Positions 3,866-63,749 are shown, counted from the stretch's first letter. The stretch is DNA of 64,000 bases from IMGVR_UViG_3300046092_000062:1-64000; one strand, 5' to 3'. The notes: a model not told the origin generated them from the sequence alone. A program made the numbers and translations.

Positions 3866-4735
3866 ATGAAACAGATTTTTCGATATTCCCCGCTAGACGC
3901 CTTGTTGTTATTGAACTTAATACTTGTTGGATCTATTCCATATATGGTAGCATACTTTGACCCTCCTGTATGGTCTTGGTTTTTGATTAGCGTATTCCAT
4001 ATTTGGTTTATTGTTAACGTGCAAAATACATGTTTACATCATCATGCTCATTGCAGCGTTTTTGTTTCAACGACTGCCAATAGAATATATGAATTATTTG
4101 TAAGTGCAGTAGCCGGATTACCGCTTCAATTATGGCGCTACGGGCACTTGCTACACCACAAGCACATAAATGATAAGCCAGTTAATGGTAAAACAAAAGA
4201 TCCAGTTTCTGTTTTTAAATATAGCAAAACGGATGAGCCTACTAATTTTTGGGTCTACTGCTGGAAATCTGCACTCTACGGTGACGCCAAGTGGTCTTGG
4301 GTATCAGTGATTCCTGACATTCTAAAAGTTAAAGAGTTGTATACTCGATTTAAAAGAGAACAATGGGCAGTTAGAATTTACTTGCTAAGTATATTTTTAA
4401 TAAATCCTGTGTACGGTTTATTTTTAATTCCAGTATACTTTTTAGCCTACTTTGTTAATAATGCAAATAGCTACGGGGAACACTGGGGAGTACTAGATCG
4501 CAGAGGCGATACTACACAGGACTCTATTGGCATTTATAGCACATGGTATAATATCTTTGGATTCGGTGCAGGGTACCATCAAGAACACCATCATAGACCG
4601 GGCGTTCATTGGACGCAAATGCACACGGTGACGTCGTCACTACACCCCGACAGAAAAATAGTTAAAGGGATACACATCCTAAACAATCCATTTTGGAGTC
4701 ACTTTAAGCTACTGTTTAAGAAAAACGCTAAATAG
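3866..4735 (+). CDS. Membrane fatty-acid desaturase/hydroxylase family protein
   Basis: Three His boxes (LHHHAH, HLLHHKH, HQEHHH) and hydrophobic TM segments. Confidence 0.8.
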   Translation: MKQIFRYSPLDALLLLNLILVGSIPYMVAYFDPPVWSWFLISVFHIWFIVNVQNTCLHHHAHCSVFVSTTANRIYELFVSAVAGLPLQLWRYGHLLHHKHINDKPVNGKTKDPVSVFKYSKTDEPTNFWVYCWKSALYGDAKWSWVSVIPDILKVKELYTRFKREQWAVRIYLLSIFLINPVYGLFLIPVYFLAYFVNNANSYGEHWGVLDRRGDTTQDSIGIYSTWYNIFGFGAGYHQEHHHRPGVHWTQMHTVTSSLHPDRKIVKGIHILNNPFWSHFKLLFKKNAK

Positions 4736-4819
4736 TATGTTCGCTCTTAATTGAGAGTTTATGCAGTTACCCAACTGCGTAGGCCTAGAACGCTATTCAC
4801 ATTTTTAAGGAGAAACAAA

Positions 4820-5770
4820 ATGGGACGTCCTTTAGCAAAAAGATTTTTCGGTAACCGTAACATCGGTACCAACGGTGGTTATACAGCAGACGATGGCATC
4901 GGCGGTGAAGGTGTAGCAAGCGCAGCAGTTAGCGGCGGTGCATACACAACTCGTCCAGTATTCACATTTACTGCACCATCATTACCGGCTGGCGTGACTG
5001 CTACTGCTACAGTAACATCAAAAGCAAAAACAGGTGCAGTAACTACAGCCGGTACAGGTTATGTAGTTGGTGATTTGTTAACTTTAACATCCACAGGCGG
5101 CTCTGCTATTGCTTATGTTGCAACAGTTGACACAGGCGGCGAGATTTTATCCGTTAACTTCAGTGGTACCGGCGCAAGCGTTGGTAGCTTTGAAGCATTG
5201 CCTGGTGCAAAATTTCCTTCTACCCCAACTGGTGGCCGTAGCTGCACAAGCAACAGCGTAGCAGGTACAGGTGCAGAAATTACTGTTACATTTGAAGCCC
5301 TATCAACGGTTATCACTAACAGCGGTTCTGGTTATACAGCAGCCCCAACAGCGGCAACTGGCCCAACACAGTCAGTTACACTAGGCGTAGTAACATTGAC
5401 AACAGACAGCGGCGATGTTGGTTCAGTAACTAACCAAGAAAATGCTATTATCGCTTACGCTTATGTAACTGGTAACAGCTTGGTTGCTGACATTAACGCA
5501 CAAAAAGGTAGCAACCGCTATCGCGTTACCACTAGCGAAGGTACAGAAGTATGTAAGCTAGTTGCAGCTACTCCAGCAGCGGTGGGCGAAATGTCTATTA
5601 CTGCTACAGACAGCAGCGGCAAGACTTACTATGTAACTAAGCTAACTAGCCACAACGCATTGTTAACACAATACGGCACAGCTGGGCACGAATTTACTGA
5701 CGGTACTATGGTTCGTTGGACATTTGATGCTCCTACATTGAACACTACTGTTCAAATTGCTAACGCTTAA
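4820..5770 (+). CDS. Virion structural protein (G/T/A-rich, fibre or decoration)
   Basis: Start MGRPLAKRFFG after AAGGAG; ITNSGSGYTAAPT-type repeats seen in phage structural proteins. Confidence 0.55.
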   Translation: MGRPLAKRFFGNRNIGTNGGYTADDGIGGEGVASAAVSGGAYTTRPVFTFTAPSLPAGVTATATVTSKAKTGAVTTAGTGYVVGDLLTLTSTGGSAIAYVATVDTGGEILSVNFSGTGASVGSFEALPGAKFPSTPTGGRSCTSNSVAGTGAEITVTFEALSTVITNSGSGYTAAPTAATGPTQSVTLGVVTLTTDSGDVGSVTNQENAIIAYAYVTGNSLVADINAQKGSNRYRVTTSEGTEVCKLVAATPAAVGEMSITATDSSGKTYYVTKLTSHNALLTQYGTAGHEFTDGTMVRWTFDAPTLNTTVQIANA

Positions 5771-5784
5771 TTGCAAGCAAACTA

Positions 5785-5813
5785 AAAATAGCACCTTCGG
5801 GTGCTATTTTTTT
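5785..5813 (+). terminator. Intrinsic terminator with UUCG tetraloop
   Basis: AAAATAGCACC-TTCG-GGTGCTATTTT + T run. Confidence 0.9.
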
Positions 5814-5864
5814 GGCCCTAAGTAATATTTTGTTAGCATAAATATCTAATAACGGAATTTATAA

Positions 5865-54154: not shown

Positions 54155-54183
54155 TTGACACTCTTGTGTTAAGCATATATAAT
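54155..54183 (+). promoter_or_regulatory. Consensus sigma70 promoter
   Basis: TTGACA-N17-TATAAT. Confidence 0.92.
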
Positions 54184-55128: not shown

Positions 55129-55202
55129 GGGCTGTTCGTATAATGGGATTACACTGGCCTTGCACGTCAGTTATTGGGGTTCGATCCCCCAACGGTCCAC
55201 CA
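55129..55202 (+). tRNA. trnA: tRNA-Ala(TGC)
   Basis: Loop CTTGCAC; G3:U70; CCA. Confidence 0.92.
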
Positions 55203-55691: not shown

Positions 55692-55780
55692 GGGGAGTTA
55701 TGCAGGCTGGGCCTGTCACGGTCTTGAAAACCGATGGACTGCGAAAGTGGTTAGAGTTCGATTCTACTATCTCCCCGCCA
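55692..55780 (+). tRNA. trnS: tRNA-Ser(TGA)
   Basis: Loop CTTGAAA, long variable arm, G73. Confidence 0.9.
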
Positions 55781-56123: not shown

Positions 56124-56202
56124 TCCGAGAAATCCAAGCAAGGTGCAGGGACCTGACTGTTAATCAGTGGTTAGGTGGGTTCGATCCCCACACTCGGAGC
56201 CA
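56124..56202 (+). tRNA. trnN: tRNA-Asn(GTT)
   Basis: Loop CTGTTAA, G73; CCA. Confidence 0.88.
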
Positions 56203-56714: not shown

Positions 56715-56791
56715 GCCCCGTTACGCTAATTGGTAGTGCGGATTCTCTCAAAAGGAGTTGGCTGTCTGTTCGAATCAGACACGGGGTACCA
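56715..56791 (+). tRNA. trnL: tRNA-Leu(CAA), short variable loop
   Basis: Loop CTCAAAA; 5-nt variable region; CCA. Confidence 0.85.
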
Positions 56792-56797
56792 TACAAT

Positions 56798-56874
56798 GCC
56801 TTCGTACGCTAATTGGTAGTGCGGATAGTTTTAGAAACTGTTGGTTGGGGGTTCGAATCCGCCCGAAGGTACCA
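56798..56874 (+). tRNA. trnL: tRNA-Leu(TAG), short variable loop
   Basis: Loop TTTAGAA; same D-arm as neighbours; CCA. Confidence 0.85.
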
Positions 56875-56877
56875 CAT

Positions 56878-56954
56878 GCCCCTGTACGCTAATTGGTAGT
56901 GCGGACAGACTTAAAATCTTTTGGTTGCAGGTTCGAATCCAGCCAGGGGTACCA
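56878..56954 (+). tRNA. trnL: tRNA-Leu(TAA), short variable loop
   Basis: Loop CTTAAAA; same D-arm; CCA. Confidence 0.85.
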
Positions 56955-56957
56955 AAT

Positions 56958-56986
56958 TTGACACTTAATGAAATGGCTGCTATAAT
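56958..56986 (+). promoter_or_regulatory. Consensus sigma70 promoter (second at 57053-57081, TTGTCC-N17-TACAAT)
   Basis: TTGACA-N17-TATAAT. Confidence 0.92.
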
Positions 56987-57181
56987 ACACACATGTTAAG
57001 AAATTAGCATAAAGTGCAGAGTAGCATAAAAACAACAGTTAGAAAATAACAGTTGTCCAATAAAGAAATTGGTGCTACAATACATACATGTTAAACAAAC
57101 AACGCAGCGCAGTGATCGTACTGTAATGCTAACAGTCTTTAAAAAGATACTGTCATATATCCCTGTTAAGTTCAGGGCTCT

Positions 57182-57262
57182 ATATGCAAACACATTAATT
57201 AACCTGGAGTGCGGTCACAGGGCATCGCAAGGTGTGGTAGCCGTGTTAATGTGTTTACATAT
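57182..57262 (+). ncRNA. Closed-stem RNA element, copy 1
   Basis: ATATGCAAACACATTA ... TAATGTGTTTACATAT. Confidence 0.6.
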
Positions 57263-57265
57263 AGT

Positions 57266-57340
57266 GGAGCTATCGTCTATCGGTTAGGACATCTGGTTTT
57301 CATCCAGGCAAGCGGGGTTCGATTCCCCGTAGCTCTTCCA
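57266..57340 (+). tRNA. trnE: tRNA-Glu(TTC)
   Basis: Loop TTTTCAT; CCA. Confidence 0.88.
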
Positions 57341-57414
57341 AGTTTTTACATTGTTTAAACCGCGGCTGATTTTAAAGTCGGATGAAGGCGAAACTAACAA
57401 TGTGATTCTATTTT

Positions 57415-57559
57415 GTGCTTCATACTATCAATTGGGAGAGCATTACCTAAAACACTAAGTAGGACATCGACAGTAAAGGCCAGTGGCCTAGGATGTGTAA
57501 GCCGTAAGTATACGGTATGTTCAGGTGATGTGTGTAGGTTCGAATCCTACTGATGTACA
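57415..57559 (+). ncRNA. tRNA-like RNA with ~75-nt insert in the anticodon loop
   Basis: Acceptor GTGCTTC/GATGTAC-A (G3:U70), TTACCT/AGGTGA stem around insert, GTAGG-TTCGAAT-CCTAC T-arm; CCA not encoded. Confidence 0.6.
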
Positions 57560-57567
57560 CAAGTTAT

Positions 57568-57719
57568 GCGGGGTCTCACATGGTGTGGCTGAAGAGATTG
57601 ATCACTCGGAGGCGAATGCGAAAATGCGAGGCCTTATGCAAGCAACCCCAAAGAGTAATTCCGAGTAAGGCACTGTAAGCATAAGGGCTTTCAGGGTTCG
57701 AATCCCACGCCCTGCACCA
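57568..57719 (+). ncRNA. tRNA-like RNA with pseudoknotted insert replacing the anticodon loop
   Basis: GCGGGGT/GCCCTGC-A-CCA (G3:U70), TTCGAAT T-loop; ACTCGGA/TCCGAGT and CCTTATGC/GCATAAGG helices cross. Confidence 0.65.
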
Positions 57720-57787
57720 ATCAAGACACATCAAAGTAGCGACTATTGCTGGAGGCGGTAGCACGTAATTAGTGTGTCGAGTTTTTC

Positions 57788-57926
57788 GTGGTAAGTCTGG
57801 AGACAAGTTATTTGACTGTATGCGTAGCAGGATTGCAAACCCGAGGGGCATATGGCGATGGGAAGTGATATCACCCGTTTGTAAAAACAGATGACTAGTT
57901 GGGTTCAACTCCCAATTACTACACCA
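57788..57926 (+). ncRNA. tRNA-like RNA (139 nt) with Ala-type acceptor and long insert
   Basis: GTGGTAA/TTACTAC-A-CCA (G3:U70); TTGGG-TTCAACT-CCCAA T-arm. Confidence 0.65.
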
Positions 57927-58000
57927 TATGCAAACACATTATACAAACCTGAATCAGCAATAGCATTGCAAAGGTTTAAATGTGTAGTGTGTTTACATAT
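57926..58000 (+). ncRNA. Closed-stem RNA element, copy 2
   Basis: Same ATATGCAAACACATTA / TGTGTTTACATAT ends as 57182, different interior. Confidence 0.6.
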
Positions 58001-58002
58001 TG

Positions 58003-58183
58003 TGTTGTTAAGGCTGATGACGGCAATCTGAAAGCAGTCTGAAATCTGACCCTGAAACAAAGTAGCTTTGCCGAGCGAATGTAGACGGAGTCTCTATAGT
58101 GTAGTGGAAGCACACCGGCATAATACGCCGGGGGCCTAGGTTCGATTCCTAGTAGGGTTTATTAGATATCAGCCTTAACAGCA
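58003..58183 (+). ncRNA. Long hairpin RNA enclosing a tRNA-like domain with AAT anticodon
   Basis: TGTTGTTAAGGCTGAT/ATCAGCCTTAACAGCA outer stem; inner D-arm, CCGGC-ATAATAC-GCCGG, CTAGG-TTCGATT-CCTAG; no CCA. Confidence 0.55.
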
Positions 58184-58195
58184 TAAAGAAATAAT

Positions 58196-58281
58196 GGGGA
58201 TACGGCGCAGTTGGAGAGGCGCGGCAGACTGTAAATCTGTTTCCACTGGATGAGTTGGTTCGAATCTAACTATCCCCACCA
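58196..58281 (+). tRNA. trnY: tRNA-Tyr(GTA)
   Basis: Loop CTGTAAA, long variable arm; CCA. Confidence 0.92.
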
Positions 58282-58282
58282 A

Positions 58283-58740
58283 GAATACTAAGACAACACT
58301 TAGTAAGATGAGTAGACGGAAACCGACCCGGGAGAGAATTCCCGGGCTTCAATAATACGAATCACCGGCGAAACGCTGCGGGTCCCGCCCGCTGTATTAT
58401 TGACGAACGATAAGCAAAGTCGGTCCAGTAGGGGTAAGAAAAGTGTTGTTAGCGGAAAGAGCTGCAACGAGACAGAAGTTAAGCGGGCATAGGCCGACAG
58501 TTTAACGCCGTGTATTCTCGAACTAATTCAAGAATTGATCGGAAAGCAAGAGCCGAAGAGTAGACACTAGCGAATGGCGGGCTGCGTTCGCATAAGTTGG
58601 GATAACTGACTAGTAGGGTAAGAGTCCCTAGTATGCCTCCTAATTCACAAATGTAAGATAGTTGCAAATGCGTCCTGCAGGTAAGTTTGCAACCGTAACA
58701 TCACAGACGGGCGACTCTGTGTAAGAAATACGACCCAGAA
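58283..58740 (+). ncRNA. Large (~450 nt) multi-domain structured ncRNA candidate
   Basis: No credible ORF; many hairpins plus long-range ACAACACTT/AAGTGTTGT and CAATAATAC/GTATTATTG helices, between tRNAs. Confidence 0.6.
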
Positions 58741-59163: not shown

Positions 59164-59366
59164 TTGTAAGTGTCAGCAAGAGAAAGTCACGCTATACAAT
59201 ATTCTTCGAAGGTGTTGTATAGTAAAAGGTTAATGGGTTCGAATCCCACCGTGCGCGGGCCATTTGGAGGCTGTACTGGACAAGTATTCCTAGTGGCAGA
59301 CTGCCCCCGTCCGGACTTGTTAATTCGGGTGAAGCGTTGAGATAACAGCGGCTCAACTACTTACAA
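59164..59366 (+). ncRNA. ~200-nt structured RNA with an internal T-loop hairpin
   Basis: TTGTAAGT/ACTTACAA closing stem; GGG-TTCGAAT-CCC at 59235-59247; CTATACAA/TTGTATAG hairpin. Confidence 0.55.
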
Positions 59367-59459: not shown

Positions 59460-59487
59460 TTGACATACACAGTTTGTCATATATAAT
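59460..59487 (+). promoter_or_regulatory. Sigma70 promoter
   Basis: TTGACA-N16-TATAAT. Confidence 0.85.
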
Positions 59488-60005: not shown

Positions 60006-60080
60006 GCGTCTGTAGTACAATGGAAAGTACACTAGGCTACGAACTTAGGAATGGTGGTTCGATTCCATCCAGACGCACCA
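60006..60080 (+). tRNA. trnR: tRNA-Arg(ACG)
   Basis: Loop CTACGAA; CCA. Confidence 0.92.
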
Positions 60081-60098
60081 ATCAACAAAGGAAATACA

Positions 60099-60527
60099 AT
60101 GTCAGCATTCAAAGTATTGCGCGGTGAGCGCATTAACGGAATCTTTCTAGGCAACGACAGCTGGGCATTAGTATTCCGTACAGTCAACGGCAAGTATTTT
60201 CGTTTTGACACTCAGAACGATTGTTGCAACAGCGTGTGGTTCAATCACATTAATGGTGCTACTATCCTAGGTGAAGGCAACAGCTTTGACCTATTGCGCG
60301 GCGCATTAGTGACTGAAACAGAAGACAAGGGTTGGGGCGATAATCGCGAAGAAGACGGATACGAAGTAGTTCAAGACGGGTTCTGGACTATCAAAACCGA
60401 CCGCGGCTACATTGATATTGAAGTGCGTAACAGCCACAATGGCTACTACGGCGGATCAGTTAAGCACATCGAAGACTTTGAGCTTGACCAAATCGAAGGC
60501 TTAAAGCAAGTTACGGAAGATTTTTAA
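60099..60527 (+). CDS. Hypothetical protein
   Basis: AAGGA SD; DCCNSVWF and RNSHNGYYGG motifs. Confidence 0.7.
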   Translation: MSAFKVLRGERINGIFLGNDSWALVFRTVNGKYFRFDTQNDCCNSVWFNHINGATILGEGNSFDLLRGALVTETEDKGWGDNREEDGYEVVQDGFWTIKTDRGYIDIEVRNSHNGYYGGSVKHIEDFELDQIEGLKQVTEDF

Positions 60528-60938: not shown

Positions 60939-61997
60939 ATGAAGATAATTGATTGCGATAGCCATTACCTACCACCTACAGTATTTGACCATGTACCAGA
61001 GCATCTAAGGCATTTGTTGCCTACGTTTGATTTCTCGGTTGACGGAAAGTTAAATCGCGTAAATTTTGAAATTGATCCAGTTAAAATTAGTGAAGGTAAG
61101 CCGCCTGAGTCGTTTGGGCAGACTGCCGGAGTAACTAACATTGACAGCAGGATTGAGGATTTTGCTAAGTTAAAAATCACAAAGCAACTGTTGTGTCCGC
61201 AAGAGCTTGCTATGCGGTTTAACTATTCTGTTGAACCAGAACTAGCCGCTGCAATGTGCAGAAGCTACAATATAGAGATTAAGAAAGTGGTTGACGCACA
61301 TCCTGACAAGTTCTTTGCAACTGCACTAGTACCATTGCAGGACATGAAGGCAGCAACAGTTGAACTCAATTGGGCTATACGTCACGGATTTAAAGCAGTA
61401 TATCTTGATAACTCGTTTATATCTGCAGATGGCACAAGTATGCCTACCATGTGTATGCCTGATATTAGTGATCTAATTGAAATCTGTGCAATGCAGAGAA
61501 TAACAATTTATTTTCATAGCATGATGCACCACGTGTTTCCCTTTGACGATCATTATCGCAAATTGCAAAGATTTTTACCCGGGTCAATCCAGCTAAACAT
61601 ATACAGCTTATTGATGTCTGGTATTTTTGATCGTTACCCTGTAATGCAGGTAGTATTCGCAGAAGGGGCAGATGTACATGCGATGCGATCGTACAATACA
61701 GTGCAGGGAGTATTTGAGCGTAAGCTGCCAGACGTACAAATGAAAAATCATCCGCTAGTGTATTTTAAAAATAACATCAGCTTTACAGTTGACATAGAGA
61801 ATACTGCTCTAATGCAACTGCTAATAAAAACTTTCGGAAGCGAACGATTGCTGTTCAGTACAGATTATCCGCACGATGACGAGTCGGGACTAAACCAATT
61901 GCACGACGTGGACGATTTGATTGCATTAAAATTAAGCAATAATGATTTAGAGAACATCGCTTACAAAAACGCCGAACGAATTTTTCGGTTAGTATAG
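60939..61997 (+). CDS. Amidohydrolase-2 family metal-dependent hydrolase/decarboxylase
   Basis: IIDCDSHY, YFHSMMH, LLFSTDYPHDD, NAERIF. Confidence 0.88.
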   Translation: MKIIDCDSHYLPPTVFDHVPEHLRHLLPTFDFSVDGKLNRVNFEIDPVKISEGKPPESFGQTAGVTNIDSRIEDFAKLKITKQLLCPQELAMRFNYSVEPELAAAMCRSYNIEIKKVVDAHPDKFFATALVPLQDMKAATVELNWAIRHGFKAVYLDNSFISADGTSMPTMCMPDISDLIEICAMQRITIYFHSMMHHVFPFDDHYRKLQRFLPGSIQLNIYSLLMSGIFDRYPVMQVVFAEGADVHAMRSYNTVQGVFERKLPDVQMKNHPLVYFKNNISFTVDIENTALMQLLIKTFGSERLLFSTDYPHDDESGLNQLHDVDDLIALKLSNNDLENIAYKNAERIFRLV

Positions 61998-62077: not shown

Positions 62078-62224
62078 AAATTTCATATCCTGTACGAACG
62101 GCAGCTCTTGCTTTTCAGGATAATCTCGTGTAAAATGTTTAACACAAGAGAAGCTCTTAGCATCGGAATAAGTTCCGTTGCCGAGTTTAAGTAATTCATC
62201 GAATCCAGGATTGGGTTTGCTCAT
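62048..62224 (-). CDS. Small antisense late protein (58 aa)
   Basis: Start preceded by TAAATA-CAGT, the spacing seen for other late genes; 3' end overlaps tRNA-Gln. Confidence 0.4.
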   Translation of the reverse strand: MSKPNPGFDELLKLGNGTYSDAKSFSCVKHFTRDYPEKQELPFVQDMKFWQRIVESNH

Positions 62225-62249
62225 ACTGTATTTAACACAAGGAAACAAA

Positions 62250-62753
62250 ATGCCCTGGATCCAAAACGTAGCACGTAGCGATGTCACTAAAGGGTTTCAC
62301 ATCAACCCCGGTGATAACGCTATGTTGATTCAAATCGTTGACTGCGGCAGCGAATTTCCTACTCCCCTTTACAAGTTTAAAGAAGCTCATCAATTTGAGT
62401 TTTTAGATGTAGAGGAAAAGGACTACGTTCTTGAAGAAGAAATGAAGTGCAGTCACGAACAAGCCGCAGAGCTAGTTCGTTTGTTGCAACATGCACTAGA
62501 GAATCGCATGAACGTTATTGTTCATTGCCATGCTGGTGTTTGCCGCAGCGGTGCAGTATGTGAAGTTGGAGTCATGCTTGGCTTTGATGACACTGAAGCA
62601 TTTCGTGCTCCTAACTTGCTAGTCAAGCATCGCATGATGAAGCAGCTGGGTTGGACGTATGATGAGAACGAAGAGCCAACGATCAATGGTCAACCATATC
62701 AATACAGCGCAGGCGGGATCATTTTACCCCCAAGTCACGAAGGTGATATTTAA
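62250..62753 (+). CDS. Cys-dependent (PTP/DSP-type) phosphatase
   Basis: HCHAGVCRS = HCxxGxxR signature; AAGGA SD. Confidence 0.85.
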   Translation: MPWIQNVARSDVTKGFHINPGDNAMLIQIVDCGSEFPTPLYKFKEAHQFEFLDVEEKDYVLEEEMKCSHEQAAELVRLLQHALENRMNVIVHCHAGVCRSGAVCEVGVMLGFDDTEAFRAPNLLVKHRMMKQLGWTYDENEEPTINGQPYQYSAGGIILPPSHEGDI

Positions 62754-63094: not shown

Positions 63095-63749
63095 GGTCCG
63101 TGCCGCAGAAGGTGGCGAAGACAGTAAACTATTTGTAAAAGACTTGGCACAAGCCTACATTAAATTTGCACACAGCAAAGGCTGAACTAGCCGCCTGATA
63201 AATGAGTATCTTGGCGAAGTTCATATCTTAGTCGAGGGTGCTGATTTATCTGGCTTATACAACGAGCCAGGTGGACACCGAATACAGCGTGTACCACCAA
63301 CAGAGCGAAAAGGACGAGTACATACCAGTACTGTTACTGTCGCTGTTGTTGATCCAAGTGTGCCGACCACTACCATAAAAGAATCTGATTTGCGGATTGA
63401 ATGGTACAGCGGAACAGGCGCAGGAGGACAACACCGTAACAAGCACCAAAACAGTGCCCGCGTTACGCACATACCTAGTGGCACAGTAGTAACAGCACAG
63501 TGTCGCAGTAGGGAAAATAGTTTGGCAGAAGCTATGCAAACTATTCGAGAAAGAGTTGACAAGATAACAAAAGACTGTTATAATAACAACTTAGCAAGCA
63601 ACAGAAAGCAACAAGTTGGTTCAGGGATGCGAGGAGACAAAATTCGCACATACCGCTTTCAGGACGATACAGTTAAAGATCACGTAAGTGACAAGACTGC
63701 AAGCGTTAAGAAAGTGTTAGCCGGCAACTTTGACTTACTTTGGAATTAA
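63078..63749 (+). CDS. prfA: RF1-type peptide chain release factor lacking domain 1, interrupted by in-frame TGA at codon 36 (63183-63185)
   Basis: EVRAAEGG..., HRIQRVPPTE.KGRVHTS (PxT), GAGGQH.NK (GGQ), IRTYRF; one frame from ATG 63078 with one TGA. Confidence 0.85.

Follow-up and report, generated by a model that had tools for sequence, protein, structure and literature searches.

In tmRNA the 5′ end is processed by RNase P and the molecule is charged with alanine because of its G3·U70 pair (PMC3985003). Alanine identity via G3·U70 is also found in some of the allo-tRNAs, which fold as 8/4 or 9/3 cloverleaves (Mukai et al. 2017; PMC5389517). GOLLD and ROOL are phage and prophage RNAs, often located beside tRNA islands, that self-assemble via kissing loops with covarying intermolecular pairs (PMC12286853). 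Phage T4 has two small stable RNAs, species 1 and 2 (rnaC and rnaD), annotated inside its tRNA cluster, and rnaC (139 nt) carries a perfect T arm, CCGGG-UUCGAAU-CCCGG, near its 3′ end and adjoining the terminal stem. The HIV-1 DIS hairpin has a short G-C-rich stem and a loop (AAGCGCGCA) composed of 1-3 unpaired purines and then a 6-nt palindrome. To our knowledge, the odd RNAs present in phage tRNA arrays (T4 species 1 and 2, GOLLD, ROOL) have gone unexplained for decades.

The window that we analysed is a 64,000-nt stretch of DNA, the first 64 kb of an IMG/VR virus record (IMGVR_UViG_3300046092_000062; 320,767 bp, about 92% complete) whose source is a freshwater phage of the huge-phage class; positions are those of the window. 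Inside its tRNA array we found a conserved, previously undescribed tRNA-shaped RNA at 57568-57719, here called element 2, that is invisible to current annotation tools: neither default ARAGORN nor the Rfam tRNA model makes a tRNA call at these positions (E up to 10), and none of the families of Rfam 15 matches it even at E = 10. It resembles tmRNA in that the acceptor stem is 7 bp with G3·U70, the 3′ end is NCCA, the T arm bears a canonical T loop, the D region is reduced and a decoding anticodon is lacking, but members of its family are 101-158 nt long as opposed to about 300-400 nt for tmRNA, and they differ from tmRNA also in the palindromic loop described below. Like the T4 RNAs, it is a small RNA inside a phage tRNA cluster, yet a covariance model (R1) built from the homologue sequences of element 2 scored only 10.7 bits against the T4 region, on the T arm only, so that homology of element 2 to rnaC or rnaD was not found; also, neither the G3·U70/CCA design nor the palindromic loop is seen in rnaC. 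GOLLD and ROOL are RNAs of 500-800 nt and more that form 8- to 14-mer cages, whereas the family of element 2 comprises tRNA-shaped RNAs of 100-150 nt with one palindromic loop (two in the neighbouring element 3), and there is no homology between them.

The tRNA array occupies the + strand from 53,990 onward and includes 35 tRNAs in the window out of 49 genome-wide by ARAGORN count, of which nearly all the canonical ones in the array have an encoded CCA. The stretch 57340-58089, between tRNA-Glu and tRNA-Ile, is without a called gene and contains three T-loop motifs (GGTTCRANTCC) and three tRNA-shaped elements. The features of the locus are as follows.

56958-56986, + strand: sigma-70 consensus promoter (TTGACA, 17 nt, TATAAT, with TG), 12/12 match.
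57415-57559, + strand: element 1, a tRNA-like RNA with acceptor GUGC..., G3·U70 and a perfect T arm, without encoded CCA.
57568-57719, + strand (the same as the array tRNAs): element 2.
57788-57926, + strand: element 3, a tRNA-like RNA with G3·U70, ACCA, a mini hairpin GUC-UGGA-GAC and a perfect T arm; about 10 homologues.

Downstream of the promoter lie tRNA-Glu, the three odd elements (1-3), tRNA-Ile and tRNA-Tyr, which would be co-transcribed. It may be noted that three such perfect 12/12 sigma-70 consensus promoters occur on the + strand (54155-54183, 56958-56986 and 59460-59487) and split the array into predicted transcription units. The tRNA-Ile(AAU) at 58089-58161 is the sole full-length array tRNA without an encoded CCA and has a mismatch in its acceptor stem. 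Three other T-arm-bearing sequences are missed by default ARAGORN; with a relaxed threshold 56124-56202 is called tRNA-Asn(GTT) and 55692-55780 tRNA-Ser(TGA), and the third, 59180-59268, has a T loop without a clear acceptor stem. Protein genes are also present within the array, coding for DUF7448 (60051-60527), Amidohydro_2 (60939-61997), a dual-specificity-phosphatase-like protein (62178-62753) and a 129-aa protein (63360-63749) with an RF-1 domain (PF00472, E = 2.6e-21) and a GGQ motif. The last looks like a ribosome rescue factor of the ArfB type or the peptidyl-tRNA-hydrolase type judging by its sequence, and relatives of it are encoded on 293 viral contigs. Elsewhere in the window the Rfam freshwater-2 RNA motif (RF02980) was found at 4743-4822 with 56.6 bits against a gathering score of 49.9. 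Outside the window, at 187515-187589, there is a tRNA with the anticodon CUA, an amber suppressor which ARAGORN labels 'Pyl' and which scores 66.7 bits with the Rfam tRNA model, making TAG recoding in the source phage possible.

Homologues of element 2 were collected by sequence patterns. Exact-pattern scans of IMG/VR with the 3′ end, an internal motif and a 5′ motif all led to the same few phage contigs, and a gapped pattern over metagenome contigs added 24 true loci along with one chance match (L123). The resulting set has 17 distinct full-length sequences (the window and 16 others) plus two truncated ones, from four IMG/VR phage records and about 25 freshwater metagenome contigs. On dividing the 17 by length, two size classes were obtained, five short forms of 101-106 nt and 12 long forms of 149-158 nt. 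When the four related phage records were scanned whole with R1, exactly one strong copy was present in each. Beyond these, BLAST of 57340-58090 against 50,697 GenBank phages returned zero matches, and in 185,579 prokaryote genomes scanned by pattern two matches turned up, both due to chance as they have neither an R1 match nor nearby tRNAs. When R1 was run on 80 viral loci (895 kb) that surround homologues of the GGQ protein, its only matches were ordinary tRNA-Gly genes whose acceptor stem is similar, and the family gained no member.

A close relative (L141, a 354-kb phage) whose array is 92-98% identical and otherwise syntenic is missing element 2. On comparing its positions 4338-5864 with 56790-58567 of the window, element 3 comes before element 1, and the tRNA-Ala of 55129-55202 is missing as well; the same junction of element 3 to element 1 is present in a contig from an RNA library (X15). 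The cassettes of the array have thus been shuffled, and elements 1-3 behave as movable cassettes. Since element 2 is absent from such a close relative, it is dispensable.

The secondary structure of element 2 was derived by RNAalifold and by pair counting on the 17-sequence alignment. Its parts are given below.

57568-57574, + strand: 5′ strand of the acceptor stem, GCGGGGU, including G3 of G3·U70; pairs with 57709-57715 in 17/17 sequences.
57577-57587, + strand: mini D-like hairpin, CACA-UGG-UGUG, invariant.
57588-57613, + strand: arm P3, at the anticodon-arm position; 3 bp, a 3x3 internal loop, 3 bp and an 8-nt loop (57597-57604) with the palindrome UGAUCA (57599-57604).
57614-57624, + strand: single-stranded linker GAAUGCGAAAA, 11 nt, identical in 17/17 sequences.
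57625-57693, + strand: arm P4, at the variable-arm position, long form (about 70 nt), basal pairs covarying.
57694-57706, + strand: T arm, GGG, UUCGAAU, CCC, invariant.
57709-57719, + strand: 3′ strand of the acceptor stem, GCCCUGC, then discriminator A and encoded CCA, from the alignment.

In the conserved core 99.1% of the cells are paired, with compensatory changes at 7 pairs, a count that is small as the 17 sequences represent only about 9 lineages. The covariation score of the core is 0.240, as against 0.03-0.05 in a control with slid partners. As a whole, the 152 nt fold no more stably than shuffles do (minimum free energy, z = -0.31). Acceptor pair 5:68 changes once from G-C to A-U (in L114), and the G·U pairs of this stem are possible on the + strand only. 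G3·U70, the identity pair for AlaRS, is kept in all 17 homologues. Pair 2:71 is C-G as opposed to G-C in tRNA-Ala, and the discriminator varies among the homologues between A, G and U. The T stem has 3 bp in the window and 4 bp in those homologues with U at the next position, and is followed by two unpaired or mismatched nucleotides (57707-57708). With a T stem of only 3-4 Watson-Crick pairs and C-G at 2:71, handling by AlaRS and EF-Tu is not guaranteed. The mini D hairpin and the linker are the most uniform internal parts, although their invariance is in part a product of the search patterns used: the metagenome pattern required the linker, while the hairpin is unchanged also in homologues obtained by the 3′-end pattern, which did not require it. 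The GG of the hairpin loop would be positioned for a possible contact with the T loop. The complement of the linker GAAUGCGAAAA, sought as an antisense target, is no more frequent in the phage genome than expected by chance.

Arm P3 has 9 layers and a loop of 8-9 nt across the homologues, with G·A/A·G-type geometry in its 3x3 internal loop. Every cell of its stem is paired, pair 21:46 being U-A, G-C or A-U and pair 28:39 being G-C or A-U. Two other foldings were considered and rejected, namely a UGAC-GUCA pairing inside P3, ruled out by homologue L011, and a 23:41 pairing at the base, ruled out by L110; the base given by RNAalifold (21:46, 22:45 and 23:44) suits all sequences. Arm P4 has covarying pairs near its base (60:132, 62:130, 63:129 and 64:128 in alignment A2). 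At its apex some lineages have alternative, partly crossing helices (CUGAR/UUCAG; AGUGACUU/AGGUCACU), none of which is consistently supported: changes in L110 and L122 are uncompensated and the window has no partner. In the short forms the whole of P4 is replaced by a 6-bp hairpin of 18 nt with an AGCAAU loop, and P4 is thus an optional expansion.

The last six positions of the P3 loop show a rule of their own. Six hexamers occur among the homologues, UCAUGA, UGAUCA (window), UCUAGA, UAAUUG, UGAUCG and UGAUCU, and the inner four positions form a perfect palindrome in every sequence even though positions 2 and 5 are G:C, C:G or A:U and the centre is AU in some and UA in others. That U·G is tolerated at the outer pair speaks for pairing of RNA rather than of DNA. 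Pairing inside one loop would leave an impossible 2-nt loop, and therefore the pairing would have to be between molecules. A self-complementary loop kept by compensatory change is what distinguishes a kissing homodimer, and it was found in P3 with six variants and in element 3 with two variants in each of two loops; among the 35 normal anticodon loops taken as a control, just 1-2 are palindromic, these being the UUGCAA loops of tRNA-Ala. From sequence comparison, the palindrome thus points to loop-loop homodimerisation of element 2. The nearest-neighbour duplex energies predicted for the G-C-containing hexamers are about -5 kcal/mol, whereas those for UAAUUG (+0.2) and UAAUUA (-0.4) are close to 0 kcal/mol, and so some of the AU-rich variants may kiss weakly. 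Hetero-kissing between the loops of elements 2 and 3 was also considered, and discarded because the loops of co-resident copies do not match (L114, L115). The P3 loop resembles the HIV-1 DIS in having a few unpaired purines and then a palindrome flush with the 3′ strand of the stem; unlike the DIS, it sits in a tRNA-like RNA of a DNA phage, and its palindromes are AU-rich and differ between relatives.

The neighbouring elements repeat parts of this design. For element 1, RNAalifold on 4 homologues gave 41 pairs, compensatory changes occurring at 10 of them, and all four sequences have G·U at 3:70; no obvious palindromic loop was seen in it. Element 3 has two hairpin loops that bear palindromes, UUGCAA and UGAUAUCA, which in relatives become UAAUUA and UAACGUUA, respectively, by two compensatory double changes each; the tRNA-Ala(UGC) of the phage itself has UUGCAA as its anticodon loop. 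G3·U70 is present in 3 of the 3 odd elements as against 3 of the 35 canonical tRNAs (two tRNA-Ala and one tRNA-Gln), and it is held in all members of the element 1 and element 3 families while other acceptor pairs change. In huge freshwater phages there is thus a new family, and probably a small superfamily, of tRNA mimics that have G3·U70 and self-complementary loops.

The initial annotation had proposed for 57568-57719 a tRNA body in which a pseudoknot, enclosed by an anticodon-like stem, replaces the anticodon loop. A tRNA body without a normal anticodon arm is indeed real and is conserved across the 17 homologues, and the sequence strings on which the proposal rested are all present in the window. 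Helix A (ACTCGGA, 57604-57610, with TCCGAGT, 57660-57666; 7 bp) and helix B (CCTTATGC, 57632-57639, with GCATAAGG, 57679-57686; 8 bp) do cross; of 2000 dinucleotide shuffles, 32 (1.6%) had a crossing pair of perfect stems with 7 bp or more each, and 37% had one stem of this length. As a feature of the family, however, the pseudoknot fails, for among the 12 long-form sequences used for this comparison it is limited to the window and a near-identical copy (L120). Covariation divides the two helices: helix A is paired in 67.5% of cells without convincing covariation and is missing in L115, a close relative, as well as in L106 and L109, while helix B is paired in 81% with compensatory changes. Helix B holds up because it is part of P4, which also contains the 3′ strand of helix A; the formation of helix A would need P3, the better-supported arm, to unfold. 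Also, the five short forms replace all of P4 and therefore have no region for a pseudoknot. The enclosing stem (CTGAAG, 57589-57594, with TTTCAG, 57689-57694) could have 5 Watson-Crick pairs and one G·U, with the last G of TTTCAG (57694) doubling as the first G of the T stem, but it is paired in only 70% of cells and is thus not a conserved helix; the strand on its 5′ side is part of P3 and the one on its 3′ side part of the P4 base, and both P3 and P4 are covariation-supported arms.

Contigs of four metatranscriptome libraries from 3 studies cover 57338-57777 and 57836-57926, the spacers 57748-57835 and 57924-58011 being covered hardly or not at all, and in contigs from diverged relatives the match ends at 57721, the CCA end. 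As these are assembled contigs and not reads, from which strand and ends are not readable and in which DNA carry-over is possible, their position on the elements rather than the spacers is weak evidence for RNA.

The best explanation of element 2, and one that we would consider evenly balanced between right and wrong, is that it is a processed, alanylated, dimerising and non-decoding mimic of tRNA-Ala, a member of a previously undescribed phage family. Its acceptor/T minihelix, the tRNA-type 5′ spacer and the encoded CCA would enable host RNase P together with 3′ trimming to cut it from the transcript of the tRNA array as a stable RNA some 152 nt long. For alanine the classical determinant is G3·U70, and AlaRS charges even minihelices that carry it. 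An RNA without an anticodon that needs aminoacylation has few other options, and so the elements are read as alanine-accepting tRNA mimics; through the invariant G3·U70, element 2 would be charged by the host alanyl-tRNA synthetase without any anticodon. With its 4-6-nt palindrome, the P3 loop of one molecule would pair with that of a second, forming a kissing complex like that of the HIV-1 DIS. Since P3 with this loop stands in place of the anticodon arm, element 2 could not decode codons and would not be a tmRNA. As a guess, it may act as a tRNA-Ala decoy or a sponge for a tRNA-binding factor, or as an alternative donor of alanine. The T stem is known to affect delivery by EF-Tu, and the weak one of element 2 may disfavour such delivery, which would fit a role off the ribosome. 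Genes for AlaRS, a CCA-adding enzyme, FemAB and EF-Tu were not found in the source phage genome, and any partner of element 2 would thus be a host protein.

The main rival, which we regard as rather unlikely, treats the tRNA ends as signals for processing and stability only, as in engineered tRNA scaffolds, with P3, the linker and P4 as the active parts (e.g. a protein sponge or a self-assembling module) and G3·U70 inherited from tRNA-Ala and unused for charging. Such a reading would be consistent with the D hairpin and linker being the most invariant internal parts, with the weak T stem and with the missing CCA of element 1, and the identity of the element 3 loop UUGCAA with the anticodon loop of tRNA-Ala(UGC) suggests descent from tRNA-Ala. 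It does not explain why a G·U that is one mutation away from a stronger pair has been kept at 3:70 in three families, nor why the ACCA ends stay encoded in elements 2 and 3.

Taking the alanylated, dimerising mimic further, these phages may encode a set of self-associating tRNA-Ala mimics with alanine-accepting CCA ends, in which element 2 would form dimers and element 3 chains or rings, as a small-RNA counterpart of the GOLLD and ROOL cages; this is a tentative proposal and we think it unlikely as a whole. If true, the assemblies would perhaps concentrate or sequester host proteins that bind tRNA (AlaRS, EF-Tu or tRNA-directed defence nucleases) during infection.

That element 2 is a decoding tRNA of a non-canonical, allo-tRNA-like kind we hold to be very unlikely. 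It would have alanine identity and an extended limb in place of the stack of D stem and anticodon stem, and its 8-nt loop would make it a suppressor (missense, nonsense or frameshift) by reading triplets or quadruplets of the CAU, GAU, CUA or AAU type. P3, with 9 layers, is indeed about as long as a D stem plus an anticodon stem, the loops can be read as U-NNN-R/Y-A in the manner of U33-anticodon-37-38, and G3·U70 tRNAs with odd cloverleaves insert alanine (PMC5389517). Allo-tRNAs are also similar to element 2 in the unusual proportions of the acceptor/T branch, the long variable arms and the varied 'anticodons' (PMC5389517); but they have a normal 7-nt anticodon loop and decode, as opposed to a palindromic loop of 8-9 nt. 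A 9/3 allo-tRNA has 12 stacked pairs (a 9-bp acceptor and a 3-bp T stem); the branch of element 2 has a T stem of 3 bp as well, after 7 bp and two largely mismatched layers, 8 and 9, which are C·C and U-A in the window and C·C and U·U in other members. The combination of a 5-bp anticodon stem, a 7-nt loop, U33 and a purine at 37 that marks a canonical tRNA is not found in element 2: several variants have C or U at position '37', and the 'anticodon' differs between close relatives and always does so together with its palindromic partner. As a tRNA it also goes unrecognised by default ARAGORN and by the tRNA model of Rfam.

Still less probable is a miniature tmRNA, a plan that the initial annotation had likened to this locus and under which element 2 would be charged with alanine, enter stalled ribosomes and provide a tag and a stop from a short internal frame. 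The tRNA-like domain of tmRNA is present (G3·U70 in the acceptor, T arm and 3′ CCA) with no anticodon arm, and a GGQ release-factor-like gene is located in the same array. However, in place of a P2 helix that joins the two halves and encloses an mRNA-like domain there are two separate hairpin arms, P3 and P4, and a conserved pseudoknot is lacking. The GCA frame suggested as a tag falls in the optional P4 region, is missing from 5 of the 17 homologues and is not conserved. The only frame anchored in conserved sequence, GCG AAA AU., stops in 16 of the 17 homologues, but in L104 there is no stop before the 3′ end, and its products (AKI, AKIR, AKIQ, AKICLA, AKMSDFIQ, AKMRDCE etc., up to 16 residues in the window) would be tags of 3-16 residues without a common C-terminal ending, on which ground it was rejected. 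This frame also begins at the tRNA core, in the 11 nt between two helices and far from any decoding centre, and a palindromic loop has no role in trans-translation. ARAGORN as a tmRNA detector and the Rfam tmRNA models and clan give no match at 57568-57719. Moreover, the phage already has a genuine permuted two-piece tmRNA outside the window (180876-181270; tag ANDEQFLMVA by ARAGORN; 116 bits with Rfam beta_tmRNA and 112.6 bits with tmRNA_permuted), and an SmpB gene was not found in its genome. The beta_tmRNA match hints at a betaproteobacterial host.

A decaying tRNA pseudogene, or a tRNA gene broken by an insertion or intron and without a function of its own, is just as improbable, for although tRNA arrays gain and lose cassettes fast, L141 lacks element 2 and the intron mode of ARAGORN can force a tRNA-Ile(AAU) with a 46-nt 'intron' (a call with a mismatched acceptor stem that differs from the conserved one), compensatory changes are present in four helices across diverged phages, the non-tRNA modules are invariant, no removal of an insert yields a canonical tRNA and even the short forms remain non-canonical.

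Phage tRNA arrays are usually taken as codon-supply kits. At this locus, three adjacent tRNA-shaped RNAs all have G3·U70 and two of them have loops under selection for self-complementarity. If the reading of element 2 as an alanylated and dimerising tRNA-Ala mimic is confirmed, it would add families that tRNA finders and Rfam now miss, and would provide a compact system of 100-150 nt, simple to synthesise, for the roles of tRNA mimics in phages and for self-assembly as a theme of tRNA islands.
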